A stretch of 64,000 bases of DNA from Ministeria vibrans ATCC 50519 (Eukaryota; Protista; Filasterea): positions 62,001 to 126,000 of the forward strand of contig CALSCP010002175.1 of the NCBI GenBank assembly GCA_943704425.1. Reading direction: 5' to 3'. A program made the position numbers and the translations under genes. Each line of letters opens with the position of its first letter. Position 1 is the stretch's first letter. Under the pieces are notes generated by a model. The model did not search any database. It saw only the letters and a list, made by a program, of their open reading frames with translations, and was not told the DNA's origin. This document shows, one piece after another, positions 1 through 28,300 of this stretch.

Positions 1-1347
1 CACTCGGGTAGGAGACAAGTGGTTCCGTCGTCGAGCGGGGACTTGGCAGCTCGATGGCAGTAAAATTTTACCCCCAAACATAGTAAACAAATACCTGAAC
101 CCGGAACGCTTGATGTTGGCTGCGTTAGCAGGAGATGTGCCGTGGAACAGCGTGAGAACTTTGCCGGCGTGTCCCTTTGTTTCAACGGTGGGCCTTATGA
201 AACAACAACAAAAGGCGCAGCATCAATAGAAGTCGGAGAAAGGGATGACAAAACTTGTATTGTTACTGTGAACTTGTACTGCTGTCTCGACACGTTTTGC
301 CACAGAAGGCAGAGTACTTGAGCGTCTTTGTGTCAAGGTAGCAGGGACGTGTGCAGCCGCTGCGGGAGCACGGTGGCGCAGGAGCGGCCGAGGCCGAGGT
401 CGCAGCGCTGGAAGTGGCGAGCGGACGCCCAAGGTTGGAGAGAGGGTTGGTAGCTGTCGTTGTGGTCGTCGCTTTGCCAGCTGGCGATGAGGTCGACTGC
501 GAGAAGGCACCTACAAAGCTGTAAAGTCAGAAAAAGATTCATTGCGCCTGATAGATATGTGTGAACCTCGAGATGTGAGGCCACGTTCGCGTGCTTCGGT
601 ACTGTGCTTGACGCCACAACACTCGTGCTGCCGCCCATTGCTGTCGACAAAAGGAGGGCGAGTGCAACCGGGCAGCAGACACTCAGTGGGCTTTGCGTCG
701 CCGCCTGTCGTCTTTCGTTGTCCCTTTCCACCACCACCACCACCACCACCACCACCAGGTGTCGACTTGAAGCACTCCTGGCACCAACCTTTTCCATTGG
801 AAGTCGGGTTTTTGAGACACTACACGTGTAGAAGTAACGGGTGAGAGGGCGGTTGAGAGAAACCCCAAGAACGAACCTTGGTGCAAACTCCTTTCTTTTT
901 AGTCATTGCATGACACGCTGTACACATGTTGGCGTTTGCTTCCATACCGCACTTCTGGTGGCACTGTCGGCAGCTCCAGCCGGCGGGGTCGTCCTTGATC
1001 TTTTCCTTTGGCACATTCGATAGTGGGAAGTACAGCGGCAATAGCTTTTTGTAAGCATCTGATGAGATATCGTCAAACGTGACAAACACAACCCGCTGTA
1101 AAGAGAGAATAAATGAAAGAAAGAACACGTAAGACGGAGAAACAATGCGAGAAAAAATCATTTCTGACAAGTTGAGATCGCTGCAAGAAGAGACGCACAA
1201 CAGACATAGCAATGCGCGCGGCCTTGTCGGTGGGGAAGCCATACACTCCAGTTGAGATGCAGGGGAACGCCTAAGAAACAAACACGCAAGAGATTGAGGA
1301 TCTTCTTTCGTCCATGTACCACAAACACACACACACACACACACACA

Positions 1348-1429
<82 letters not shown>

Positions 1430-3074
1430 CACGTACAATGGATTGCGCATTCTTCTTGACAGCAAGCTCAAGACAGTTGATGTAGCACTTGGCGAGGTTG
1501 TGCGTGGCGTTTGGCTCGTGGCCCTGTGGACCAACCGTGTGAAAGATAGCCTTGAGGTGCTTGAGACGGTAGGGCTTTGTATCACATGCACTGCCGACGG
1601 GACAGCGGTCGCCGTTTGAATTTGTGGACTTTTTTTGACACTCTTTTAGCAGCTGCGGACCGGCGGCTGCGTGGATCTGCGCAAATCACACAAGCACAGA
1701 AAAACCCCCAAAAAAGGGAGAAGAGAGAAGTAGTGATTAGTGATCCAAACAACAGAAATGGTTGCAACTTACAGCGCCATCTACGCCCCCTCCACCTACA
1801 AGACGGGCGTTGGCGGCATTGACAATGATGTCAACGTCAACCTTTGTGATATCCGTCTTGAAGACGGTCACGAAGCCATTGAGGTCTGGACGGAACTGCG
1901 CATATGCAAAAGATGTCTGGTGGTTGGCGGGATTGATGCTGGCATCGCCCCACCAGAGCGGCACGGCAACACAGCCCGACGAAGAAGCCGCTGTTGCTGC
2001 CTTGCTCAACGCCACCGGCTTGCTGTCAGTGGTGCTCGTGGATGATGCGGGTACGCGGCGGCCATGTTCCGACTGATCGCAACCACAGTACTCGCACTCA
2101 GTCGAATTTACCATGGGGTGAAAGGTGGGGCAAGAGCACCCGGGTCTAAAACAAGGGAGTTTGACGGGAGGAGTGTTGCCACGACCGTGGCTTGCTTGGC
2201 TGTGTTGACAAGCGTCACACACGGCCATGCCAGCGCGAGCAGTAAACGTGGGACACGAGCACATTGCCTGACGACAAGGGAGAGAAATATTGTCGGATGA
2301 GGGCGGGAAACGCTTGGTGGACGCAGTGCTTGTGGTGGAAGACGAGACAGTTGACGATACAGCAGGCGAGGCAGCAGCAGTCGAGGTCGCGGTAGTCGGA
2401 GCAGCAGGAGACGGGGTGGCGGTAGTCCCAGCAGAGAGAGAGGAGTTTGGCTGCACGGTGGGCTCCACGGGAGGCGTGGCAGTCGCGCGTAGGCTCGCGC
2501 ACGTCTCTTTCAGATTATTGCGAGCCTCTTTGAGGGAACCTATTTCTTGCTTCTGCTCCTGAATGATCTCATTCAGGCGTTTCACTTCCTCCCGCGTCGC
2601 TCGCAAATCTTGCTGCGACTGCTCCGCCCACTCCCGTGATTGCGCCTGTTGAGCTTGCATCATCTGAAGCATTGTGTTTGTTGCATCGTGCGATACCGCA
2701 GAAGCGGCGGATGGAATTGCTGCTGGTGGTGGTGCTGTTGATGTTGGTGTTGTTGTTGCTGTTGTTGTTGTTGTTGCTGTTGCTGATGTTGGTGTTGTCG
2801 GTGGAGTCTTACGATTCAACTCAAGAGACCCATCCGAGTCCACTGTAGGGAACACCGGCTGCGGCGACTCCGCTGCGTACGGAGGAGGCGGCGTGTCGAC
2901 GGGACAGTGTCGCTGCGACCCCTCCACGCTCTCCACACCCACCCGCGCGTGCTGTGCCGGCTTGCAGCCGCACGTGCAGCATCGGAGCGAGCTTCCGTCG
3001 GCCGGAGCAACATAGTCCTGGCACTGGTTGCACTGGCACGCCCCGAGAAACGCTCCTGTGACATCCTTTCCCAT
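1..3074 (-). CDS. Multi-exon, 3'-partial protein: three Cys/His modules, coiled coil, MacroD-type macrodomain, zinc fingers, start of an ART (PARP-like) domain
   Basis: Spliced translation gives [28 protein letters not shown]|[13 protein letters not shown]...IFHTVGP...[12 protein letters not shown]...SI|[13 protein letters not shown], the MacroD signature (~1170-1860). Fingers CLLPGCTRP...HECCGVKH and [10 protein letters not shown]...FCGKTC follow. [21 protein letters not shown] lies at ~95-165. Introns are GT-AG and the gene runs off the window edge. Confidence 0.85.
1325..1424. repeat. (CA)n microsatellite, intronic
   Basis: Direct inspection. Confidence 0.95.
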
Positions 3075-3619
3075 TGTTGATCTTTCATGAACAACCCCAA
3101 CAGACGAAAAAAAAAAAAAAAAGAAGAAAAAAAAAGAAGAGAAAAAAAAGACACTGTGAGATCAAAAGCTGTGCACTCATAGCGGTAAATGGTCACTATT
3201 GCGCCATGTGTGTCCTATCCACATGTGCGTGTAACGAGTGGGAATGAACGTAAAAAGAAAAAGAAAAAAAAAAGTTTCCCCCAAAAACAAACTATGTCGT
3301 CTTGTGCGGCATTGGCTGCCCCCACGATACCGCCTTAAAGCGTATATCGTATATGTGGTAAAGCCTGTCGATTTTATGTTTCACTTTTGAGATAAAACAC
3401 ACAAAAACAAAAACAGGCCAGATAGGCCCTGCCGACGCTACTTCCAGTGTGCTACAGCTCACTTACTCGCTAATCTATCCAATATGATAATAATGAAAAA
3501 GAATGCAATTTCAATCGAAAATTCGATAAAATCGATAAAATCGATTTTTTTCCGACGTTTTTTTTATTATTATCGGGTGAAATAAGTGAAATACGTGAAT
3601 AAACACACTCAAATCTGTT

Positions 3620-5228
3620 ATGCTTTCAAAGTGCACCAAATGTCGGGAGTGTACTCGGTTCATAGACAGTTCGGGCGGTGGCACATGCGTCTGCGGCTGT
3701 TCTCGACTCTTCCACTTGCCCTTCTTGGGCCGTTGTGTCTTTTCTGACTGTCCCGAGCATACGTTTCTCAGCGGCGATGTGTGGAACGAGTGCGGGTACT
3801 GCGATCACTCTTATGAGATGCACTGTGAGCCTGAACGCCGCGTGGATTTGCAAGGAGTGGTCGACGACGAACTCGATCGTTCGTCCAGCTCCGAACCACA
3901 CTCCGCCGCTGCCGCTGCCGCTGCCGCTGCAGCCGAGGCAGACGTGTCTTTGCATCTTGCGCTGTTCTCGTGCAGCGAGTGCGCGCATGAGCAGTCGCTG
4001 CATTTTGAGCGTCTGTCGACAGTCTGCTCAAAATGCAATCACCATTGCTCCTCTCACCACAGACAAGCGAACGAGCGCCTCCTTCGCTGTGCAGCCTGCT
4101 CTCTGGACGAGGCATCTCACAAGGCGCTCCACGACCCCTCTGATCCGTTTGCGTGTGACTACTGCGGACATGCTCTGGCAGACCACAGCGACGCCCCTGC
4201 CCCTGCACCAGCCCAGGACGACTTCTTCGCGCCAACGTCGCAAGCGTCTGGACTACTGGAGGGCAGCCAGACGCGTTGCTCCAAGCCATCCGGAGCATCC
4301 AGATCGTACGCGTCAGCAGCGGCAACGTCGTCTCAAGACTGCGCCAAGTGCAGGCAGCGAGCAGCGAACCCAGGCCGCCCGTGGTGTCAACAATGCTTCG
4401 CGCAGCAGAGCCAGAAGCCAACCTCGCCCCCTCCAGACCGCTCGCATTCCAGCAGTGTCTCGTCGCACTCTCAGTCAGTCTGCAGTCTTGTTGCTGACGA
4501 CTTCAGGAAGGGCATCAAGAGGAGGGTGGTGGGGGCGCTCGGCTTCGGCTCTGACAGTTGTGTCTTCAGTGAAAAGTGTACCCTCCCGCTTGCAGACGAC
4601 TCCAACGGCAATCGTCTAACGATGTGCAGCAACCACGGTATTTTTATAATACTAATATTACAATGAAAGAACAATGAAACCCCCTAATTCCTTTCCGCTG
4701 TATAATTATAGCGCCGCGCTGCAACTTCTTCGGGTGCGAGAAACTCTGCATTCGGGAGAATTACAAGTACCATGACTTTTGCTCACGCTACCACGCGAAA
4801 AACTTTAAGCCATTCTTCGCGCAAAATTTCCTGAAACAAGACGACATTCCATCGAGCTTCCAGTTTACAGCCGTGTGCAATGTGCTCAGCCGCCGCTTAC
4901 TACGCTCCAAAACGAACGACCTTCACATTGTCTTCTTTGTCCTACACTGTCAGTGTCCGCGCACCGGCATCATCTGTACTGAAGGCATTGGATGTTCGCT
5001 GTGTAACATGGTGCGCACAGGCAAGGTGCCCCGCTCGGCCATACCGACGCCGCTTCACCGCTGCGTTCGCGGCGATTTCCATTTCGGGCGCATTTTGGTG
5101 GTCTGCGAGACGGAATTCTATGTAAGAGTATGGTTTTTTGATAAATTTAGTGATGCTTATGATCTCTCTCTCTCTCTCTCTCTACTCTGTTTTTCTCTCT
5201 CTCTACTTCGTTTCTCTCTCTCTACTTC

Positions 5229-5295
<67 letters not shown>

Positions 5296-5310
5296 CCTAT
5301 CACTTTTTTT

Positions 5311-5390
<80 letters not shown>

Positions 5391-5391
5391 T

Positions 5392-5437
<46 letters not shown>

Positions 5438-5447
5438 NNNNNNNNNN

Positions 5448-5544
<97 letters not shown>

Positions 5545-5759
5545 CTCTCTCTCTCTCTCTACTTTGTTTCTCTCTCTCTCTCTCTACTTTGTTTCTCTCT
5601 CTCTATCTCTCTCTCAAAAATCTCTCTCTCTTTTTCTTCTCTTCTTTCTTTCTTTCTTTTCTTTCTCTTTGTTTTTCTTTCTTGCTCTTGTTTTCTCTCT
5701 TGTGTGGGTAAAAGATGCACCACGACCCGGTTTACAGTGTCATTGGAGTGCTGGGCTGA
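3620..5759 (+). CDS. Cys/His-rich multi-zinc-finger protein with a putative degenerate ART-like C-terminus (paralogue of 14096-15800)
   Basis: Exon 1 MLSKCTKCRECTRF...MCSNH; exon 2 APRCNFFGC...HDFCSRYHA...CPRTGIICTEGIGCSLCNMVRTG...LVVCETEFY; inferred last exon MHHDPVYSVIGVLG* (~5715-5759), which matches the paralogue's VNKDDRYCVIGVLR*. Confidence 0.75.
5163..5620. repeat. (CT)n microsatellite tract, intronic, containing a 10-N gap at 5438-5447
   Basis: Direct inspection. Confidence 0.9.
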
Positions 5760-5909
5760 ATTCAATAAAATATACAACTATTTCTTCCTCCGATTCGATT
5801 CGTCTATTCAACCTTGGATCATTGCTTGTTTGTTTCAGTTTTTCTTTCATTCTGATATACAAATTGATGTCTGTGCGTATGTATGTGTGTGTGGGAGAGA
5901 GGGGGATAC

Positions 5910-7636
5910 TTAAGGAGCAACATAACAGAAGACATAGCGGGGAAGGCAGGCGTCCTCGCGGTACACAACAACCTCATCGTGGTTGAGATTGCCCACCGTG
6001 GCATTTTTGACCTCGCCCAGAACCGAGTCGCATCCGTCGGGCGGTGCAGTCAGTGTCAGTGCGTCTTGTTGTAGTCGCTTGCCGTTTCCCACGACCACTT
6101 TGGCCAGCAGAACCCGTCGCACTTTCTTCCCCGTATCAAGTACCGTCTCCGCCCTATTATATATTATTGGTAATGTAAGATAAACACTTTCCTCTCTCTC
6201 TCTCTATTACGTTTCTCTATTACTTTCACTCTCTATCACTTTGTTCTCTCTCTGTCACGTTGCTGATTCTCTCTCTATCACTTTTTTCTTTCTCCATCAC
6301 TTTGTTCTTTCTCTCTCTGTCACTTTGTTCTTTCTCTCTTTCTTTCTCTCTTTTTCTCTGTCACTTTGTTTCTTTCCCCTCTCCTTTCTCTCTCTCTCGT
6401 ACTCATCACAGTAGTCGTTGGCCTTTCCCGACGTAGACGAGAAGTAAATGCCTCGTCCAAAGCGATCAAACCCGCGTTTGCTGCTCGCTGCTACTTTAAA
6501 GCCCCCTTCGGCAATCCGACACAGTGCACATCCGGCGTGCGCGCACAGATTGGTCGCACTTATGGATGTGCCCTAAACAACACACAACGTAGAAGACTTG
6601 GATTGATTCTATTCTTTGGACTATGGAGGTTGTGTACCATTTGACATTTAGCCGATGTCCCGTGAAACCGTCTTTGTTCATTGCCGGGCGCTCCACGGTT
6701 GTGGGTCGCGGGGTTCTTGGAGATGATCGTTTGCTTGTAGGCATCGTAGCGCGGCTCGAGGGAGCATTGGGAAATGCGAGTGATCTGAACAATCTCAGGT
6801 GCAACGCCCTTGACCCATCTCGTTTGAAACTGCTTGCACAGGGATTGGTACTGGCTGTCGCTTTTGGAGACAACGGATAGCGCTCGTGGAGGAGCTGGGG
6901 CGGGAGTAGGAACAGCGGAAATGTCGGGGCGAGGAAGCTTTTGTCGTCGATTCCACTCGTCCGCATGCGTTTTCCCGCAACACTCGTACGATTCACCACC
7001 GTCCTTTTGAAAACGCGGTTTACGGCAGCCTGCAACTTTGCAAACGATAAAGCCAAGCGCGTTCTTCTCTTGTGTGTCTTCTTGGCGATGCTTTGGCGTG
7101 CAAAAGAGATAGGGGATTTGCGGCGTGCGCATGCGACACGGTCGGCGACACCCTGGATAGGCACAGACGGGCTCTCTCTTCGACTTCCGCGACGACTCGG
7201 GCGGCGGGTCGTGGAATCGCCTGGGAGTGGTGGTCTCACTCTCATCCTCCATGAGCGACCACTCCAGTCCGTCGTGTCCATCCTCCGCCTCTTCGTCCTC
7301 ATCACAGTCCAAGAGACTCAAACGACCAACCCCATCCTCCTCCTCCTCGTCGTCGTCGTCGTCATCGTCGTCATCGTCCAAGTCCACATCCTCCTCGTCG
7401 TCGTCGTCGTCGTCCGAGCCCTCCTCCGCGTCGTCCGAGTCCTCTTCGTCGTCTTCCTCCGCCGCTCCGTCGTCGCAAAGAGAATCCCCGCTCCCTGCAA
7501 ACACCTCGGCAGGGACCACCTCCATGTGCTTCGCTGGCGCATGTGTACACTGGCACCGTACGTTTCCCGGCGCAGTCGTGAACTGCGGACACGCACATTG
7601 GGTGCAATGGCCGCGAACAACTCCTTGGCAGTCCAT
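5910..7636 (-). CDS. ADP-ribosyltransferase (ARTD/PARP-like, H-Y-E) with N-terminal Cys/His module, acidic tract and two CxxxGC..CxxxH fingers
   Basis: MDCQGVVRGHCTQCAC...; GNEQRRFHGTSAKCQM|GTSISATNLCAHAGCALCRIAEGGF...FDRFGRGIYFSSTSGKANDY|...RRVLLAKVVVG...PPDGCDSVLG...LNHDEVVVYREDACLPRYVFCY; three exons. Confidence 0.9.
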
Positions 7637-7857
7637 TGGGAAAAAAATGGAAAAAGAAGGGAAAAAAACGAACACAGAGAGAAGAATAGGGAGCCTCAAG
7701 GCTAGGAGGGAGGGAAGAAAGAGTGGGTGGGGGCGGTGGGGGGTGGAGAGGAGGAAGGAGCACTCTGAACAAGAAAGTTGAGAGGGTGAATTATTATTGT
7801 TAGTGTAAGAAAAATAAACACAGTCGAAGATAATCAACGAATTGATTACTTTTTAAT

Positions 7858-9336
7858 ATGGCGTCCTACGACTCTATGGGGATTCAACGGGGCAAGTGTA
7901 CAAAATGGTAAGAGGACGACGAGAGAGCGAGAGGGATGTAACACTCTCAAAAACGTCTCTCTCTCTCTCTCACTCTCTCTCTCTCTCTCTCCCATTCCGC
8001 AGCTCATGCTCCATCTTCCAACGTGTGCCCGACGGCGTTCGGTGTTCATGCCAGCATACGCCGGTGGCGCATGTCAACGTAAGTGCGATGGTCCTTCTGC
8101 GTCGATGTCAAGACGGAATGTGTTGGGGTGTTTTGACAGGTCGATGAGTGCGAGACAGCCAGCGCAGTCCATGCGCACAGCAGCCATGCAGGTGCCTCGC
8201 CACAAGCCCCGTTCAGGTCGCTCCTGGACGACGGCGACAACGACAACGGCGCCCGCAACAGCGCATACGGCGCAGAGAGACAGTCCTTCTCCCGTTCCGC
8301 TCCCTCACCCAGCTCTCACTCCGCCTCCCACTATTCTCCGCCCGCTGCGCGCAAGGCTCCCCATAATCTATCACCCATACTCTTCTATCGCCGAGGTGAA
8401 CCCTACTTTGAATTCACCAACTTTTATGCGGGAAAGCCAGTGAGACAAGTTGAGTCCTTTGAGCTCTGTGACTGAACTACGTATGACGTTGCTGCTAGAT
8501 TGTGATCGACGGTCTGTCGTGGCCCACCAGCGAGCACTACTTTCAAGCAATGAAGTTTCCTGATACAGCTTTATCGACCCGTGAACACGTCCGGTGAGTA
8601 GATCACACACACACACACACACACAGAATTATACATAATGAGACTGTGTTTTCACAGGAGCGCTCCGACTGTGAGTGAGGCAGTTGCGCGTGCTCGCAAA
8701 CAAGATCCTTCGTTGGTTGTGCGGGGGTGGAGGACTCGCAAGATGGTCGTGATGAAACGGGCTCTCTTCGAAAAGGTTCACATTTCTCTCTCTTGATTGA
8801 CTTTGACAGTATCTCTTGTACAGTTCTGTGATCCGTCACTACGTCAAGTGCTACTGGACACACATGATGATAAGCTTGTTGAGGACTCACCAACGGATGC
8901 GTTTTGGGGCGGGGGAGCAGATGGACGGTAAGTGAGTGAGTGAATCCATGGAATATGTCAGCGTGATAGTGAGCGTTCGTACGAGAGTAAATGCAACAGT
9001 GAATTCGAGTGGTAGTGACTCGCACGATTGCGTTTTATTTTAACTTCTACAGAGGAGAGAATCAAATGGGAAAAATGCTCATGGAAGTGCGGAAAGTGCT
9101 CAGGGAGAGACGAGAAGGGGAGGAAATGGGACGATTGGACAAGATTCTGGCTCAGTATGTGCAGGAAGACCGAGAGAGGGAAGAACAAGAGTACTCTGAA
9201 AAGGTATGTGACGACCTGAGAGGAAACAGTTCTGTTTGTTGTGTATGTGTGTTTATTTTGTTTTTTTTTCTGTTTTGTGTAGAGAAGAGCTCTTGAGAGT
9301 GAGATCAGACGATTAGAACAACACGAAACTGAGTAA
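7858..9336 (+). CDS. NADAR/YbiA-family protein with N-terminal Cys/His module and C-terminal coiled coil (NADAR-1)
   Basis: Spliced: MASYDSMGIQRGKCTKC|SCSIFQRVPDGVRCSCQHTPVAH...PILFYRRGEPYFEFTNFYAGKP|IVIDGLSWPTSEHYFQAMKF...MKRALFEK|FCDPSLRQVLLDT...LVEDSPTDAFWGGGADG|GENQMGKMLMEVR...HETE*. Confidence 0.9.
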
Positions 9337-9462
9337 ACACATTTGAATAATCTCAACAGGATTGCCTTTGTGTCGATCAAATAGAAACAATATGAAGTGA
9401 TAATACTTTTTTTTCGTCAATTTCATTATGGGTGCGCAATACAATTAATTTTATATTGCGCT

Positions 9463-10647
9463 CTACTGCTCGGGAGGCGGTGTAAATTCGTAAGTGACAT
9501 ACTGTATAGGAAGTGCGGCTGACGGACTGTACACAACATATTCATCATAGTTGAGATCCACTCCTGGTTTGCCATACACAGAGTGGAATCCCTAAGCAAA
9601 GACAGAGATAGGATGAATAAAGAAACAGAGCATAGAGAGAAAGGAGTGAAAAAGAAACAAAGCATAAAGAGAGAGAGTGCTTAGACACACGCAGAACTCC
9701 ATCGAATCCTAGTCTCACCTTTGGAGGTCCGTCCAGGTCCACTGCGGTCTTCTGTAGATCATACTGCTTTCCGAGAAGCACCCTTGCAATAAACATCCCT
9801 CTGATGCGCCGGTGCGGCTTGCTTCCCCTGACTTCACTCCTGCACACAATAGTATTATATGCAGAAGTCGCTGATTTCATGGAAGAAGTATACGTTACAC
9901 TTACCCTTCCGAGTAGTCGTGTGCTTTGCTTGAGGTGCGAGTGAAGTAAAGCGCTCGTCCAAACCGATCAAACTTGCCATCAACTCCTTCGCGTACACGC
10001 ATGCCGTGGTGGATGATGCGACACGCAACACACCCGTCATAGCTGCACAGCGCTGGCTCACTTTGCGTGTCGAGACCCAGCGAGCACAGTCGAGTTGTGC
10101 CGTGGAAGCGTCGTTTACTGTTCCCACGTCCCGCATGCTTGCCGTCCGGCTTGACTCCCTCCTCAACCAACGCATCCTGGCACATTTCCCAGCGATCTTG
10201 CACCGCATCGTTGTGAATCCGCAGCACCGACCGCACACGAACGTCTGTGCCGCGCTCCTCCCCGTGCGCCCACTGCCGCTTAAAATACGCCTCCACGTCC
10301 GCCACCGTCTCCTGCGACGCCCACCACACCCCGCACCAGTTGAGCCCCAGCCCGCCCTTCGGCAGGAGCAGTGCGGACGGAATGCTTCCCTGTGCGCCTC
10401 TCTCAAAAATCCGCCCGTGCAACTCCGAGCAAAACTCATGCGTCTTTGTGACGCTCCCGCGGACGAGCTTCACTTTTCGACGGCAGCCCGCCAGTCTGCA
10501 GGGGTCTCGGACGGCGCGACGCAGCGCCTCCAAACGGCACGAATGGGAGCAATGGGCGAAGAGCGATCCGTCTTCCGCCGTCGCTCTCTCGCTCTGACGG
10601 CACACGGGACACACAGAATCCGGGATGCCCGCATGCAAGGTTGACAT
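9463..10647 (-). CDS. ADP-ribosyltransferase (ARTD/PARP-like, H-Y-E), paralogue of 5910-7636
   Basis: GNSKRRFHGTTRLCSLG...LCSYDGCVACRIIHHG...FDRFGRALYFTRTSSKAHDY|...GMFIARVLLG...PPK|GFHSVYGKPGVDLNYDEYVVYSPSAALPIQYVTY...*. The start codon is not certain. Confidence 0.9.
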
Positions 10648-10935
10648 GGCACTTGCTTATGGGTTTCACAGTGTCGAGAGGAGAAGAAAGAACGACAAAA
10701 ACTGAAACTGAAACTGTGTATTGAACTCAATCACATAGAAAATCGCACCGCACAGCAGCACGCCCAAAGCCCGCTTAGTACTTAGACTACTTTGTCTTAT
10801 AGTGCTTTTTATCACTGCAGCCGTTGATCGGATATTCAGAATTGTGTTTGCTTTGCTTTTAATATATTTCCTTTCGCTCAACACTTTCAGTATCTTTTTA
10901 CGCCCTAGTCGACTTCACTCTTTTACTTTTCTCTC

Positions 10936-12704
10936 ATGCACAAGGCCGACGTGCCTTGCGAGCAGTTTTGCCCAGGGAGCCGTGCTGTGACTTGTGAGTG
11001 CGGACATGTAAAATCCAAACACTCTCCGCCAAAGAGAACAGCCAGTCCGAATGCCTCCAAGCCCGCCACACCCACTGGCACGTATGCACAGCCACGCTCA
11101 GGTGCCGCTCCGCACGGCGCAAGGGTGCCCGATCCGTCGCCCACAGCCAAAGCAACGAGTGCGTCGTCTGCGAAAACAAGCCCCTCTCCTCTTGCCGTCA
11201 CGAGCGCCACAGCGACAGAGAACCCTTCTCGTCGAAGCACAGACACGATGCAACCTTCTTGTACGCTTGCCTTGGCTCCGCAGCAAGCAAAGTCGGAAAG
11301 TGTCTCCAGACTGGACGAGCCGACTCGCCATCTATCATCGTCTGCAGCCAAGCCAGAGTCATCGCAGACGACTCTCTCACACGCCCGGAAAGAGCCGCCA
11401 AGCCCATCATCGTCTGCAGCCAAGCCAGAGTCATCGCAGACGACTCTCTCACACGCCCGGAAAGAGCCGCCAAGCCCATCATCGTCTGCAGCCAAGCCAG
11501 AGTCATCGCAGACGACTCTCTCACACGCCCGGAAAGAGCCGCCAAGCCCATCATCGTCTGCAGCCAAGCCAGAGTCATCGCAGACGACTCTCTCACACGC
11601 CCGGAAAGAGCCGCCAAGCCCATCATCGTCTGCAGCCAAGCCAGAGTCATCGCAGACGACTCTCTCACACGCCCGGAAAGAGCCGCCAAGCCCATCATCG
11701 TCTGCAGCCAAGCCAGTGTCATCGCAGACGACTCCTTCACATGCATGGAAAGAGCCGCTAAGCCCTCCGACGTCTTTATATTCTACTCCTGCCCCATCCT
11801 ACCCTCCTTTAAGCGCCGTGCGAAGCCCCTCAGCTTTCTTCCACGGTCCTTCCCACCACAGACACACCGTCCGATTCTACGCCGAGCATTCTGGCCATTT
11901 CCCGCTCTCGAACATGTATCCATCGACCGTAAGTGACAACCGATTGATATGTGTATATTTGCTACCTCCTTTCCCATAATCTCATCGTATCTTTTTTAGT
12001 TGTACATATTTGGGTTGGCGTATGCGAGCGTTCTACACTTCTTCCAGTCGATGAAGTACGAGCACACCTATCAGTATCTCCCCCATCTGTTCCAGACCCT
12101 TCCCTCTGCGCGCGACTCTTTTACACTGTCGCGCACACACGAGCGGCACAAGCGGCCCGACTGGGAAACGGTCAAAATGCAGCTCATGGAAGATGTTCTC
12201 ATGGCAAAAGTACGCTTGCAGTGGTGCACAGCGCCGTTCCATTGACACTGCATTGTTCCTCATAGTTTACGCAGTGCGATCGGCTGAAGCAAACGCTTCT
12301 GGGCACGGGTGAACGGACGTTGGTTGAGAACTCGCCACACGACGCATTTTGGGGAGTGGGAGCACACGGACAGTAAGTCAAAGACGTAGACAAGATAGAG
12401 ACACTCAGTATGTACACATGCAGGGGACGGAATGAGCTGGGAAAGACACTGATGCGAGTGCGGACGCGCATTCGTGCGAGCGAGTACAGACGACAGAGAG
12501 GCGAGCACAGAGTGCAGAAGCTCAAGGAATTGCGCGCACAACTCAAAGCATTGGAAGTGGTCCATCGGGAACGGGTGAGTGAGAGAGTGAGACACAGAAA
12601 GAGACCCAAAAATTATGTCAATCACACTCCGTTTTTTGTTTGAATTTGTTTAGCTGAGGTATATGGACAAAAAGATTCAATATCTGCGCGACACGCGCTA
12701 TTGA
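10936..12704 (+). CDS. NADAR/YbiA-family protein with partial Cys/His module, 24-aa tandem repeats and an altered EHY motif (NADAR-2)
   Basis: PCEQFCPGSRAVTCECGHVKSKH; TVRFYAEHSGHFPLSNMYPST|LYIFGLAYASVLHFFQSMKY...KRPDWETVKMQLMEDVLMAK|FTQCDRLKQTLLGTGERTLVENSPHDAFWGVG|GRNELGKTLMRVR...|LRYMDKKIQYLRDTRY*. The 5' end may extend upstream. Confidence 0.85.
11335..11766 (+). repeat. Coding 72-bp tandem repeat, 5 identical copies plus 1 diverged copy (SSSAAKPESSQTTLSHARKEPPSP)
   Basis: Direct inspection of DNA and translation. Confidence 0.95.
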
Positions 12705-12773
12705 TGAGCGGACATGTCACATACATACACATACAAACACAACAGTGGTCATTACGTAACACAAAAGCGCCTC

Positions 12774-13895
12774 TCATTCAGTGTCCATTGGGCGTCTGCG
12801 CGTCCTTTCGTTCTCAATGTCCTTATTAACCTGAGCCAATCGGCCCTCCGCAGCCCTCAACTAACAGAGACAGAACAGATGACCTCCCACACATACACAC
12901 ACGCAAACACACAGACAGGCTTTCGCTCACCTTTGCTTTGTGCTCCTCACATTCCCTAATCAGTGCCGCACGTTCGCGACACAGCGCCTCTTCACGTTCC
13001 CGTGTCACTTTGGCATCTTCTAGTGAGCTTTCTTCACCTGCAATCCGTGCTCGTGTCACCTCCAGTAGATGCCCAAGTCGGTTCTGGCCCCTACAAAAAG
13101 AATAACAATTGTTATACAATCTCACTATTCAACGATGCTTTCTCATACGTCGAATCGCCACCGTCGCCCCAGTACGAATCGTTGCGTGTGTGTTCCACCA
13201 ACTTGGCATTTCCAGTGCCTAGCAGACGTGCCTTCAAGTTTTCATGTTGCGTAAACTACACGAGAGAGTGTTAGCCAGTCAGGCAGTCAGACAACACTAT
13301 CAAGTTACCTTTGCGTACAGCGCCCGCTCCATCACAGCCTCCTTCACTGCCTCCCAGTCCTTGCGCTTGTAGTCATTTAACTCTCGAGCGCGCGTGAATG
13401 CGTCGCGGGGCGTCACCTGTCGCTCTATCTCGTCGGGAATGTGCATGACCTTTCCTGTGAATTTGTGTGCCTGGAAATAATGCTCGGTCGTCGGCCACCG
13501 GCGGCCGTCAAGGACAATCTACAGCCAGCACACAGAGAAACGTGTTAGCAGCTGGGAGGGAGGCGGACGAGGCGCGCGGGCTTACAGGAGAGTCATGGAA
13601 GTTGGTAAACTCGTAGAATTCTTTGTTTTTGTCGTAGAAATTGATGACGCGCTGAACCTAGAGGATCAAACAAGCGCCAGATGAGGCCAGAAGACGCACT
13701 TGGTCGTGTTCCCACCTCCTGCTTGGCGTGCACTGTGGGCTTGTGTCCGCAGACGCACGTTTGAGATAATTCCGAAGGATCAAACCGATCGCACGACAAA
13801 CTGCGCATTGTGGTGAGACACGCGATGAACACAGCGCCGCTGTTGCCTTACCATGTGTTGCAGTTGTACCGTAGCACCCCTTCAGCGTCCTCCAT
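12774..13895 (-). CDS. NADAR/YbiA-family protein with N-terminal Cys/His module and C-terminal coiled coil (NADAR-3)
   Basis: MEDAEGVLRYNCNTC|LSCDRFDPSELSQTCVCGHKPTVH...INFYDKNKEFYEFTNFHDSP|IVLDGRRWPTTEHYFQAHKF...KRKDWEAVKEAVMERALYAK|FTQHENLKARLLGTGNAKLVEHTRNDSYWGDGGD|GQNRLGHLLEVTR...MDTE*. Confidence 0.92.
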
Positions 13896-14095
13896 CTCAA
13901 AATAATCAACAGATGAAATTATAAAAGTGAATTAAAACTGAAACTCAAAATAATTATGATTACCTCGTAATAATAATAATAATAATTAATAGTATGTTCA
14001 TTCATTTGAAAAAGAAAAAGAGAGCAAGGTGATACCATAACAGACACACACAGTCGATACGAAGGTCGTAACAAAAGCGTTTACTATTGTATTAA

Positions 14096-15800
14096 TTATC
14101 TCAAGACTCCAATGACACAATATCGATCGTCCTTGTTTACCTACAAAAACATTGGTTACTCTCATCCCTTTGTCCATCATTGACTCACCTGTCGCACCAT
14201 CTCACAGACAACCAGAGCAGCACCTCCGCCATAGTCGATAGCATGACACTTTTCGGGATAGGAGTGCGTTGTGCGCTTGGGGAGGATGCCAGTGCGCACC
14301 AGTACGCACAGTGCACATTTTTTTGACTTCGAACAGACACCAGTGTGCGGGCACCGCGTAGCCACATCCAAGTACACCAGCGAAATATTACTAGTACTAC
14401 CACCATTACTGCTGCTACTGTTGCTACTGCTACTGATACTGCGAAGTTCCCGCTGTGCCGCCACATTGCACACCGCAAGGAACGGCAGGTGCACCGGCAA
14501 CGCGTACTCTGTGTGCGTCAGTGGTCGTTGAGTGAAGTACGGCTCAAACTCGGACGCATGCGCCTGTCCGCAGAATTCGTGGTACTTCGTTGCGCTCTCC
14601 ATCGCGCATTTTAGTGTACATCCAATGAAATTGCATCGAGGCGCTGCAGAAAGAAAAGAAGAAAAACACAGAATCAGAAAGCTGTTTTCGTTTTTCGGGA
14701 GTGTTACCATGAGAATGGCACATGGAAAGCTCATTTCCATTCTTGTCGCGTGCGCGTGTATTGCGACAAACGGAAGGGTGGGCGCAGTCTTGACTGAAGA
14801 AGAGACTGGCGGCTTTCTGCAGAAGGCTCTTGTTGCTCCTGACGGACGACGAGTCGCTTCTGCAATGGTGACACAACTGATGATCGGGGCTTGACAGCCG
14901 CACCTGACACTTGCTACATTGTATCTCGCTTGACGATGCTTCTGCTGTGGCTGGGGGTGGAAGCGGGAGCCGCGTGTCTTGGTGTGACCTCTGAGTCAGT
15001 GAGCTGTGGCTACTTGCGTGTGCGCTCTCCGGCCTGGTATGAGAAACTGTATCGTTGACTGACGAGGCAGAGAGGGGCTTATCACAATGATCGGCCAATG
15101 CGTGTCCGCAATAGTCGCAAGCAAAGGGGTCAAAAGGATCACACAGCACCTTGTGTGACCCCTCTTCGATAGAGCAAGCCGCGCACACAAGGGCCCGGCT
15201 GTGGTCTTGCGGCGAGTGCGCCGAGCGTTGGTGATGGCATTTGGCGCAAGCACCAGTCTCAGTTGTTGAGACATGGTCAAGAAAGTGAAGACGCTGCATA
15301 TGCTCACATTCGCTGCAAGAGACAAGCTGTATGCGTCCTGGCACATCTGCTGCGACTCCTTCACGATGGGCGTCTGGTCCTGACACATCCGCTTCGTCCT
15401 CCACCGCCCCTGCAGCAGCTGCGACTCCTTCCCGATTGGCGTCTAGCCCTGACACATCCGCCTGGCCCTCCACCGCCCCTGCAGCAGGCGCGACGCCTTC
15501 CCCGTTGGCTCGTTCCAGCCGCAGTTGCTCTCGAACGCATTGTTCAACCTCCTCGCCGCGTTCCGGTTCACAGTGCGAAATATAGCAGTGGTCGCAGTAC
15601 TCGCACTCGTCCCACAGCGTGGTCGTTTGATAGCGGTGCAGGTGGTCGCACCCTTGCTGGGTGCACTGAGCCAAGTGCGGCAAATGGAAGAGGCGAGAGC
15701 AGCCGCAGAGGCAACTGCGCGCATCCGCATTCCCTCCGGCGCCTCTGAACTCAACGCACGCATTGCTCCCGTACTGGCACTTGGTACAGGCACGGAGCAT
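14096..15800 (-). CDS. Cys/His-rich multi-zinc-finger protein with a putative degenerate ART-like C-terminus (paralogue of 3620-5759)
   Basis: Shares CGCSRLFHLP, ECxYCDHxY..HCEPER, CAACS..E.SHK.L.DP.DPFACDYCGHALADH, APRCNF.GC and LVVCE with 3620-5759, and has the same intron positions. Confidence 0.75.
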
Positions 15801-16182: not shown

Positions 16183-16333
16183 NNNNNNNNNNNNNNNNNN
16201 NNNNNNNNNNNNNNNNNNNNNNNNNNNNNNNNNNNNNNNNNNNNNNNNNNNNNNNNNNNNNNNNNNNNNNNNNNNNNNNNNNNNNNNNNNNNNNNNNNNN
16301 NNNNNNNNNNNNNNNNNNNNNNNNNNNNNNNNN
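16183..16333. other. Assembly gap (run of N)
   Basis: Direct inspection. Adjacency across the gap relies on scaffolding. Confidence 1.
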
Positions 16334-16964
16334 NGGGTGCTAGCGTGCGCGTTATCTATCCTTTTTAGGGCTTCGTTCGCTTGTGACAAAAAGCGAAAAA
16401 AAAATTTCAAAAAAATACCGTTTGCACCCGAAATCGCCTTCGCAAGCGGTCTATTGTCTCACCGGAGCTTCACACTGGCTATGTAGCCTTGTGTTTGGCT
16501 ATTTGTGGGTGCTAGTGCTTTCGCGATTGCATGATTTGTCGGCAACCCATTTTACTGCAGTTCTGTACCGAATCTGTGTACCGCTTGGCTTTTCGCCCTC
16601 GGGGCTAAGTAGGTCTGCTACTCCCACAGCCAATTCACGCACATTCAGCTACGTACATGCACCCCACTGTTAACTGTTTCCATATCCTCACCATCCTCAC
16701 CCAAACACCACGCAGTCGCACACAATCCCTCTCCAGTTCACCTCGAGCACGGTGAGTGGGGAATCGCCTTCGAATAGCCTCCATTATCCAACCGCACAAA
16801 CACTCATTTTTTCACGTGCTGTGGTGACGTCTCTGAGCTGCCTTTCTTAGCTTTGTGCTCATCAGCGCTTATCATACGTCTCAATATGATAGGCATTATA
16901 AAGAATTAATAATAATAATAGTATTAATAAAGTGTATTCAAAATACTACTTAGTAGAGTCAGCT

Positions 16965-25010: not shown

Positions 25011-25278
25011 ATGTCCAGCGCATTGGACGAGCAGCTGGCGACAGGCATCCGCGATGCGCTGAGCCGCTTAGGGTTGAAATTGATCATCGTGGCGCGCATC
25101 AAAAAGTCCGTCCTCGAACTGCTCACTGCCCTCAGCGAGCCTGCCTGCCACGCCGCCGTGGCGACAGCCTTTGTTGCCGAATGCAAGATGCTCACAGCGG
25201 GCACTCAGGACGCGTTTTTGAGCCTGATGCGCCGAGTCATTGACAACACCAAAGGCACCTCCTCAACAACAACAACAT

Positions 25279-25320
<42 letters not shown>

Positions 25321-28300
25321 CTTCAGCCGCCTGCGCATCCTCTTCCCCTACTGTGCCGCCGCCCCCCATTTTGCCACGCCACCTCGACGGAACTGTCTTC
25401 AGAGTGACGCGCGACACGATTCAGTGCCGTGTCGACTACTCCTCGACGGAACAACGCAAGCATTTCCCTTCGGAGCTCTCTGCTCGCCTCAATCAAGCCG
25501 CCCAGCCATGGGGGTATGCCCTTCGCTCTGATGACAAGGTCCGCCTTGCAGTGGGACCAGCCAGAGGGCAGACAAAGAAAATTTACGTCCATTCTGTCAC
25601 TGTCACAAAGATCTCATCGCCCGTGCCTCGTCCGAGGGACATTTTGGTCGCCTTCGAGAACGACAATCCGACTCGCATTATTGAGATTCTTGCTGACGGC
25701 GGCGAAGCGGTTCTTGAGGCTCTGCTCACGCATGACTCGAGAGAGTGGATCAACACAACGCACCTTGCCCAATTCATCCGTGCGTGTGAGGCCGCACTCT
25801 CGTGTCCCACTGCAAACTTGCAGATGACGCGTCGGCAAACGCTTGCCGCACTCATTGGCGACAGTGAATTTTTCACCGTTGCTCTCGTTCGTCTGGCACC
25901 CAAGCTCAGTTGCGCTCGCCTCCCGGTTCTCGAGCTTATGAAGCTTATGCGTCTCATTGTGCTCAGTGCGCCACACCTCTCGCCCCACATTGTGTCTATG
26001 TGTCGCGCACTCAGCGTCAACCCCTTGGTGCGCCTTGATCCCAGTGCCATTCTCGACATCTTTGATCCGCTTGCCGACGAGTATGCGCGCAAGGACACGC
26101 GCGCACGCACACCGGCCTCCATTCACCGCCAACTCCAACAACAAGACTACACCAAACTCTCTCTGATCCCACACGTTTCCGAACTACGCTGGCCCCTACC
26201 CCTTAACATGCTTCCCGACGCTCAAATTCACTATGAAAGCGCTCACACCATGCTCGACACACTCTTCAAGCTCTACCGTGCCGATGCCTTCCTCCAACTC
26301 CAAGCTCTCGTCGTGGAGCACATCAACAGCAAAAAAAGCACGCCTGCTTCGCCATCCAAGCGCGTAGGTACGGCTAGCACAAGTCGCAACTATGTGCACA
26401 CGAACGTGCAGTTTGTCGGCTTTCATCAGACAGAGCGAGTCTACATGCACGCTCAACGCAACTGGAGTGTGCTACTGCGTCTCGACCGCAAGCCGAGCTC
26501 CTCCTCCCTTATGTACGGCAACCTTCTTGCTGTGTCGCCCAACGGCTCTTTTGCGCAACACAACACTCTCTTTGTCGCCATTGAGCGTGATGACGACAAA
26601 GGCTCTTCCAAGAAGCTCCTCATTCGAGTGCGACTGCTGCAGACTCCCACCTCACCCGATGCGACCACTGCATTGCTAATGCTAGCCCACAGTCCGTCGC
26701 TAACCTGCATTGAGAGCCCCGTCTTTTTCGTTGCCTTTGCCTCAGTCATGACTGCTCTTCAGCGTCTCTCCGACACCTCGCTGCCGTTCCCCGACGATCT
26801 CGCTGCTCCAGCCAACCTACCCTCTACCGCATCTGCTCCTCCTGCATACGTCACTGAGCAAACAAACAACACCTGTGATTGGAGCATCATCTTTCCAGGT
26901 GCTTCCAAGGGTCCGTGCACGCCCAAGCACCTTGCCTTGTTGCGCACCTCCATGACCGCTTCCCACCTGGACGTGAGTCAACTTGAAGCTCTTGAACACA
27001 TCCTCTCGCATCGCCTCGCGCTTGTTCAGGGGCCCCCTGGCACCGGCAAGAGCCGCCTTGCTTCTCACCTTGTTGCGTTGCTCCTTTCCAACCCTACGCA
27101 AGACCGTCCCATTGTGGTCATCACATACAAGAACAAGGCTCTCGATGACTTTTGTCTCTCCTGTATGGAACTTGCGGGTCTTTCTCCAGGCGAGCTTGTT
27201 CGTCTCGGTAGTCGCTCTCAAGACCCAAAGGTGAGGGATGGGGGATGATTGTTTTCGGCTCTTTCAGCTTACATCACCACTTTGTACGACTTCAATAGAT
27301 TGCCGAATGCAGTGCGTCGAAACTGTTGTGGAAAACGCTCACCCACGAGCAACGGAGCTCAGTGAAGCGACTTGAGGAACAACTGTCGCCGGACAATCTA
27401 CCGCTTGAGGAGGAAGTAGAGAGGTCCATTGCGAAACTTGAAGACGCTCTGTCACTGGAGTGTGCGGTTGAGGCGTTGCTTGAGGTGTGGACGGACCGTG
27501 CGGAGCTAGTCAGCGAATTGATGGCGCTGGTGGAGCCGCCGTCGTCGTTGAGTGCATCAAAGAAGAGTAATAGAGGAGCGGTCGACTTGGACAAGAAGGA
27601 GACGTTGGAGATGCTCATTGCCGAGTTTCAGTCAATGGAGCCCGGGCAAATGCTCGATGTGGTGCGCGGGGATGAACAGTCTCAAGTGAGAGGAAGTCTG
27701 AAAGAGCGTCGTTTTCTGATGCTCAACTGGCTCACCAAAGCAGTCGCTACGTGGCTCGATGTTGCACACTGCTCTGACGCTGCCACTGGCTTCCTCGATG
27801 ACCAGACCGACGACACCGTTGCCAGTGCGCCTGACAGTGACATTTTGCACGATATCAATGACCTCGAGATGTCGCAGAACGAAGAGCGCTCGTCGACTGT
27901 GCACGAGCGTGTGGCGGCCACGAGCGAGTCGCTGGGCAACGACTTGACGAAGGAAAAGGGAAAGCGCGCAAAAGAGATGGACATAGGCGATGGTGTCGCG
28001 AAGGGACAGCCAGATGACTATCGACGTCCAGTGAGCGAGTCGGTCGAGTTGCTTACGCACGCCGTCCTGAGCGCCCTTCGTCTTGACGCTCAGCCGAACA
28101 CCACAAGCACGGCCGACGGCGACGATGCCACTTTGTTGGCCTCCATGTCACCGTTAACGTCACTGTCACACCCACGGAGCCTTGCGTCAAGCGCACCGGC
28201 CGAACGTCGCCTCTACCTCGGAGGTGTGCTTCTTGCCACAGGCCGAGTATCGCAGCTTTGCTCCCACATTAAGCGACAGCTTGCCACTGCTGACTCGCTG

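Follow-up and report, generated by a model that had tools for sequence, protein, structure and literature searches.

Why should one small cysteine/histidine module open the genes of enzymes that add ADP-ribose, of enzymes that remove it, and of relatives that have lost their activity? The question is raised by a gene cluster of the filasterean Ministeria vibrans ATCC 50519, which occupies the first 15,800 nucleotides of a 64,000-nucleotide stretch of contig CALSCP010002175.1 (C2175:62001-126000, assembly GCA_943704425.1; this whole stretch is called the window, and positions are counted from its first letter). The module stands at the start of seven of the eight genes in 1-15800 (Macro-ART, 3620, ART-A, NADAR-1, NADAR-2, NADAR-3 and 15800), with the copy in NADAR-2 truncated, and PARP-B is the sole gene that lacks it. 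The answer tentatively preferred here, which is drawn from sequence comparison, is that the module may be the shared N-terminal recruitment or targeting tag of an ADP-ribosylation cluster.

The module is about 35 residues long and follows, by regular-expression and profile scans, the pattern C-x2-C-x-C-x2-[FY]-x8-14-C-x1-2-C-x-[HC]-x4-H, which contains seven conserved putative ligands: five Cys, one position that is His or Cys, and one His. All of the copies that a first-pass annotation of the window had listed were recovered by these scans, including the two additional internal copies that it had placed in Macro-ART; of the motif that it had proposed the Cys/His core stands, whereas the G-x-x-R leader is found in the N-terminal copies only and is not a general feature. 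The copies are old and under constraint: they share between 23 and 55% identity over the core and are as close to foreign copies as to each other, with four ligand positions invariant in all of them. Among the copies, only the truncated one of NADAR-2 lacks the first two Cys; the modules of NADAR-1 and NADAR-3 were searched exon by exon, each exon separately, and their exon-2 pieces do not extend to these positions. NADAR-2 itself starts with MHKADVPCEQF and keeps only C-E-Q-F...C-E-C-G-H-x4-H; a reading of 10640-10935 found no upstream exon that would provide the two absent Cys. In gene 3620 the N-terminal module is followed by about three degenerate half-modules (e.g. 4130-4195).

That the module is a genuine homologous domain, representing a conserved family without a Pfam model, is borne out well beyond this genome. 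The first-pass annotation had proposed a profile search with a listing of the fused domains, and such a search, run with HMMER using ten copies against 1.84 billion representative proteins, returned a real family of 95 proteins at E ≤ 1e-3. The module was found in 94 of these, with the same ligand pattern throughout and in 185 copies, mostly one or two per protein and five at most. Its fixed position at the extreme N-terminus is itself conserved: the first module starts at most 15 residues into the protein in 60 of the 94 homologues, and in 38 the leader M-[KR]-D-x-[QR]-G-[IV]-x-R-G-x-C stands at residue 1. It has to be noted that many of the 95 are first-exon fragments, because eukaryotic contigs were put through prokaryote-style gene calling, and full architectures are under-reported as a result; one of them (P0044) is the product of the window's own gene 15800, and a named homologue, from the glass sponge Oopsacas minuta, is annotated as a hypothetical protein. 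No Pfam family scored above its cut-off on the whole open reading frames, the isolated modules or the 95 homologues, and a PDB sequence profile search with the module gave nothing at E ≤ 10. The ESM Atlas, queried with one module, returned only unnamed clusters at 0.83, which is uninformative, and a word-based protein search found no match for the first exon of ART-A and only unnamed metagenomic relatives for the two-module protein P0060. In the literature, no paper was found that names the module, and the paper on the Gig2 family describes no N-terminal Cys module.

Within the Ministeria genome the module is restricted to the cluster. A six-frame profile search of the whole assembly (29.7 Mb, 2,860 contigs) was made with two profiles, one built from the nine window copies (A1) and the other from 36 copies of six sources (A5), and both returned the same ten sites, all in C2175:58975-77797 (~19 kb), the next best match having E > 0.1. 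The first-pass annotation had considered that the module might turn out to be a common zinc finger spread over the genome, and this is not what was found, since all ten profile matches lie inside the cluster; elsewhere in the same assembly some 15 PARP loci, two NADAR genes and three macro loci are free of the module, an absence that is provisional in so far as the assembly is fragmented. The cluster also contains a ninth gene, 3 kb upstream of the window, whose module (C2175:58975-59082) starts with MLDSQGILRGPCTECGCVEFQQAANGSVRCVCGCRPICH and is followed by four fingers and an ART domain, so that the cluster reaches past the window start. This gene spans C2175:58897-61300 (L013:6897-9293) and is broken by a microsatellite that contains a short run of N.

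The association recurs in two or three other eukaryotic assemblies, where the same N-terminal module is present in PARP/NADAR clusters. On a eukaryotic contig of 1.08 Mb and 39% GC (L019; ENA ERZ25068803), a span of 21 kb contains four genes opened by a total of six modules, together with a PARP/NADAR pair in head-to-head orientation and one more NADAR. One of the four module genes conserves the module-finger-ART architecture, its ART and the ART of the gene upstream of the window sharing 45% identity (E 1e-28), and the PARP of the head-to-head pair, which has a 4-Cys insert, matches PARP-B at E 1e-12. Another sample (L017) holds four modules and a PARP, and the contig of P0037 has three PARPs and one NADAR; P0097, encoded on L017, and P0037 fall into one 90%-identity cluster, and the two contigs may come from closely related organisms. 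The NADARs of L019 carry the second finger type of the ARTs, described below, and not the N-terminal module. With the module on the NADARs here and the second finger on those of L019, erasers have taken up zinc modules of adjacent writers more than once, and in a different manner in each of the two lineages. On the strength of this recurrence, there is good reason to regard the cluster as one functional system.

Outside such clusters, the module occurs in bacterial and phage proteins, where it is fused to an SNase nuclease, a DSP phosphatase or a peptidase and is encoded on a phage-like contig or beside an integrase. Targeting and adaptor domains typically show fusions to enzymes as varied as these. 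The phage-like contig (L016:4873-6216; Logan ERR14790940) codes for a DSP-type phosphatase with about six tandem modules, and DNA polymerase A, endonuclease VII and UDG are encoded nearby. In a eukaryotic metagenomic gene region (L015:9551-11928; JGI 3300062365), at least 12 tandem modules are found between a formin and a fibrillarin gene.

The kinship of the carriers bears on how much weight the sharing of the module can be given. A second finger type, C-x4-C-x14-17-C-x2-3-H (C-x-[FLY]-x-G-C-x14-17-[FYE]-C-x2-3-H), is present in Macro-ART, 3620, ART-A, PARP-B, 15800 and the upstream gene, and in no NADAR of this cluster. The EsV-1-7 cysteine-rich repeat (PF19114) was considered for it, and has no match in the cluster or in the whole genome; its one match, on L019, scores 20 bits and stays below the 25-bit cut-off. 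An alignment of ART-A with PARP-B runs from the second finger into the PARP H-G-T region (E 1e-6), and the two are paralogues, while gene 15800 is a paralogue of gene 3620 and also aligns weakly to the ART-A and PARP-B proteins. Pairwise similarity to proteins of the PARP lineage is seen for ART-A, 15800 and the upstream gene, and Macro-ART and 3620 belong with them by common finger and architecture only. The first-pass annotation had spoken of a module that brings unrelated enzymes together, and this does not hold: the ART-type carriers are paralogues with a common second finger, and so are, among themselves, the three NADARs. Since the ART-type carriers are paralogous, their module was inherited by descent, and the independent acquisitions in the cluster come to about two and not seven. 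That the first exons of ART-A and NADAR-1, which lie head-to-head, arose by a recent inverted duplication was also considered and was rejected, as these exons share only DNA matches of 16-19 nt, which is the level of chance.

The common intron of NADAR-1 and NADAR-3, which the first-pass annotation had placed inside the second Cys codon, was confirmed on the DNA: it is GT..AG and of phase 2 in both genes, and splits the codon as TG/C in the one and TG/T in the other. The sharing of this intron indicates that the module passed to the NADAR lineage in a single transfer, ahead of the NADAR duplications. In the model favored here, the ancestral gene would have had the layout module, C-x4-C...C-x2-H finger and ART, from which the paralogous ART family would have inherited the module. 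Binding of the module to one common partner or ligand would then co-locate writers (the ARTs), erasers (NADAR and macro) and the catalytically degenerate paralogues 3620 and 15800, with divergent promoter pairs allowing the proteins of the cluster to be co-expressed. It is the combination of cluster restriction, ligand conservation, fixed N-terminal position, recurrence in other organisms and varied fusions that suggests such a role in recruitment or targeting.

Several observations weigh against the recruitment model. The sharing stems largely from descent, the module having been acquired independently about twice; PARP-B does without the module, and two of the ligands are gone from NADAR-2. 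Some family members are stand-alone tandem arrays: the sponge gene and its neighbor, as well as a metagenomic gene, sit among housekeeping genes with no PARP or NADAR nearby, and both the interaction and the metal binding of the module are putative. Structure prediction adds no binding mode: AlphaFold2 gives small, beta-rich models of moderate confidence, for one module (predicted local distance difference test, pLDDT, 71.5) and for the conserved two-module unit (pLDDT 80.6; predicted template modelling score, pTM, 0.55), and there was no significant structural match for either model in Foldseek (best E 1.1-5) or, for the one-module model, in a wide VIA-align search (no Z ≥ 2), which is weak evidence given that the domains are very small. 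The interpretation given by the first-pass annotation was upheld in part: the cluster-restricted module and its recurrence in other PARP/NADAR clusters speak well for a single system, and the sharing among unrelated enzymes that it had assumed was overstated. Binding of nucleic acid, as it might be deduced from charge, found no support, the mean net charge of the 185 copies being -0.2.

A serious rival, if on balance an unlikely one, is an inherited cis-acting role, in which the cluster consists of tandem duplicates of one module-ART gene with one exon-shuffling event into NADAR, and the module acts only on its own polypeptide, in folding, stability, auto-regulation or the sensing of redox state or zinc. 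Such a passenger would be expected where five or six carriers are ART-lineage paralogues with a common second finger and the three NADARs are paralogues with a common intron, and the presence of the module in unrelated contexts without PARP or NADAR fits as well. It is harder to reconcile with the retention of the ligand positions over very divergent copies, even in the catalytically degenerate genes, with the recurrence of the cluster association in other organisms, and with the repeated acquisition by NADARs of the zinc modules of their neighbors.

A homotypic assembly tag, as the first-pass annotation had proposed, is more doubtful still. By analogy with death-fold and effector-associated domains, copies of the module would bind each other and hold writers, erasers and pseudo-enzymes in one complex, for which the enzyme-dead or enzyme-poor multi-module proteins (3620, 15800 and P0060-like) could serve as scaffolds. 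In at least three assemblies, the same single N-terminal tag is indeed carried by several different effectors within one cluster, with enzyme-poor multi-module proteins alongside; the logic matches that of the effector-associated domains (PMC7159879), and the pTM of the two-module unit hints at a defined module-module contact. However, arrays with 6 to 12 or more tandem copies on a single polypeptide are unusual for homotypic adaptors, and no STAND or NTPase hub bearing the module was seen in the window, where the AAA_11 gene at 25011-27245 is without it. Taken together with the phage and bacterial occurrences, the arrays speak mildly for a general binding unit, which explains them no less well than a homotypic adaptor of the death-fold kind would. 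The weakest of the alternatives, an artefact of chance or base composition from Cys-rich frames over repeats, draws on the fact that regular-expression matches on (CA)n frames do occur, and is practically eliminated by profile E values of 1e-8 to 1e-15, the restriction of the matches to the cluster, the 95 homologues and the splice sites, which restore the motif exactly.

On the whole, the domain labels of the cluster genes proved right. In each of the three NADAR genes the NADAR exons exceed the Pfam cut-off, and the PARP signal is weak yet present in PARP-B and ART-A; the coordinates of these domains and of the modules are collected in Table 1. Six of the genes form three divergent pairs, Macro-ART/3620, ART-A/NADAR-1 and PARP-B/NADAR-2, with 221-545 bp between the ATGs (221 bp for the head-to-head pair ART-A/NADAR-1), which makes co-expression of the paired genes likely.

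Table 1. Positions of modules, second fingers and enzyme domains in the cluster (window coordinates, unless a contig is named; sequences in brackets).
Feature	Position	Strand	Evidence or remark
Macro-ART, N-terminal module	2949-3074	-	profile E 3.9e-9; gene start 3074
Macro-ART, internal module copy 1	2178-2288	-	profile E 7.5e-15
Macro-ART, internal module copy 2	2055-2165	-	profile E 2.3e-14; directly ahead of macro domain
Macro-ART, macro domain exons	1770-1823, 1434-1679, 1208-1279	-	downstream of modules
Gene 3620, N-terminal module (MLSKCTKCRECTRF...CVCGCSRLFH)	3620-3724	+	regular expression and profile
ART-A, N-terminal module (MDCQGVVRGHCTQCACPQF...RCQCTHAPAKH)	7517-7636	-	profile E 3.2e-13
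NADAR-1, exon 1 (MASYDSMGIQRGKCTK + TG)	7858-7907	+	read from DNA; ends ...AAA TG; GT donor 7908-7909
NADAR-1, intron 1	7908-8002	+	read from DNA; 95 nt, GT..AG, phase 2, within second Cys codon
NADAR-1, exon 2, remainder of module ((C)SCSIFQRVPDGVRCSCQHTPVAHVN)	8003-8078	+	profile E 3.2e-8; first base C
NADAR-1, NADAR domain exons	8668-8925, 9051-9104	+	Pfam
PARP-B, first exon, with second finger type at 10417-10500 and PARP H-G-T region	9904-10647	-	PARP E 6.7e-5
NADAR-2, truncated module (MHKADVPCEQFCPGSRAVTCECGHVKSKH)	10936-11031	+	profile E 2e-9
NADAR-2, NADAR exons	12012-12212, 12254-12475	+	Pfam
NADAR-3, exon 1 (MEDAEGVLRYNCNT + TG)	13852-13895	-	read from DNA; ends ...ACA TG
NADAR-3, intron 1	13801-13851	-	read from DNA; 51 nt, GT..AG, phase 2, within second Cys codon
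NADAR-3, exon 2, remainder of module ((C)LSCDRFDPSELSQTCVCGHKPTVH)	13716-13800	-	profile E 7.5e-9; first base T
NADAR-3, NADAR exons	13255-13518, 13148-13261	-	Pfam
Gene 15800, N-terminal module (MLRACTKCQYGSNACVEF...CLCGCSRLFH)	15675-15800	-	profile E 1.1e-10
Second finger copy	604-681	-	
Second finger copy	4720-4794	+	
Second finger copy	6965-7042	-	
Second finger copy	7088-7165	-	ART-A example
Second finger copy	10417-10500	-	
Second finger copy	14558-14635	-	
Second fingers of the upstream gene	L013:7338-8364		

Some further features of these genes and of their surroundings were seen. In NADAR-2 the spacer between the module and the NADAR domain contains six near-perfect 72-nt tandem repeats (11334-11765; 98% identical), each coding for a Ser/Pro-rich unit of 24 residues (SSSAAKPESSQTTLSHARKEPPSP), and gene 15800 has a 69-nt repeat resembling it at 15349-15509. 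In Macro-ART a C-x2-C-x10-C-x2-C knuckle pair lies downstream of the macro domain (820-1000, minus strand), representing a third type of small putative zinc motif in this protein. The window as a whole has eukaryotic features, namely long microsatellites, short GT..AG introns and a GC content of ~52%. Between gene 3620 and ART-A there is a (TC)n array of ~450 bp (5163-5615) with a 10-N gap (5438-5447), which is intergenic and affects no module or reading frame, and two more gaps, of 152 N at 16183-16334 and of 10 N at 51948-51957, lie outside the module region. At 55940-57715 on the plus strand there is an intron-less, single-exon COG2 gene, whose best matches are metazoan COG2 proteins (hemichordate, mollusc, annelid and echinoderm; 38-39% identity), followed by fungal ones, as would suit a holozoan or other opisthokont protist with a small genome and few introns.

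Among known domains, the zinc ribbon or rubredoxin-like folds resemble the module in having two C-x(1-2)-C knuckles and short beta strands, and the weak Foldseek matches include rubredoxin, the C-terminal domain of rubrerythrin, the Trx2 zinc finger and Rpb12 of RNA polymerase, all with E > 1. The module differs from these in its seven conserved ligands, as opposed to four, which implies a different metal site; such a set could accommodate two metals that share a bridging Cys, and the module is probably stabilized by zinc. The SWIM zinc finger (PF04434) has a pattern, C-x-C-xn-C-x-H, that is contained in most copies (e.g. C-A-C-P-Q-F...C-T-H), with His at the SWIM position in 139 of 174 (~80%) and Cys in 35 (20%). 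However, the module has three further conserved ligands, and none of nine copies matched the SWIM profile at E ≤ 10. The only Pfam model to match the module repeatedly is FAM221A/B (PF14753), a eukaryotic family with repeated Cys/His motifs whose function is not known. ART-A aligns to positions 80-116 of its profile and NADAR-1 to 88-128 (E 0.05-0.09), an overlap suggestive of a distant kinship, with the best window scores of 13.7 and 12.8 bits falling under the 25-bit gathering score and the matches of 6 of the 95 homologues (best E 9e-4) also under the cut-off. A family search of the assembly found no FAM221 gene in this genome. No link of FAM221 to ADP-ribosylation is known.

At the level of the system there is an analogy, of function only, with the effector-associated domains and death-like adaptors of conflict systems (Kaur et al. 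2020, PMC7159879; 2021, PMC8195603), in which a small terminal domain is found on diverse effector enzymes of one neighborhood. The same terminal domain is likewise found on several effectors here (ART, macro-ART, NADAR and degenerate ARTs) and on four genes of L019, whereas PMC7159879 describes no effector-associated domain with a Cys/His pattern of this kind. It is conceivable, although improbable, that the module is their eukaryotic counterpart: a zinc-dependent homotypic or scaffold-binding tag, kept from unicellular relatives of animals to sponges, which would bring enzyme-dead paralogues together with PARP-like writers and with NADAR and macro erasers in one regulated ADP-ribosylation "immunity" complex, possibly acting on nucleic-acid bases. 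A NADAR from a sponge has been shown to strip ADP-ribose from G and C in both DNA and RNA, and the endogenous eukaryotic writers of this modification are not known (PMC12945103), which makes ART/NADAR clusters with a common tag worth testing; if the above were true, the complex may supply the endogenous G/C ADP-ribosylation so far not found in eukaryotes. In any case the profile of the module, a widespread Cys/His domain without an adequate Pfam model that phages and bacteria also use on nucleases, phosphatases and peptidases, provides a handle to find such systems in other genomes and frames a testable hypothesis of writer/eraser co-recruitment.

The pairing of ART with NADAR genes is also known from bacteria, in the DarT/NADAR system DarTG1. 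The ARTs of the Ministeria cluster differ from it in being PARP-like and not DarT, and a shared N-terminal Cys/His module is no feature of the bacterial systems. Here, PARP-like ARTs are paired head-to-head with NADARs, one N-terminal module marks writers, erasers and dead paralogues alike, and this arrangement recurs in other assemblies of the animal lineage.

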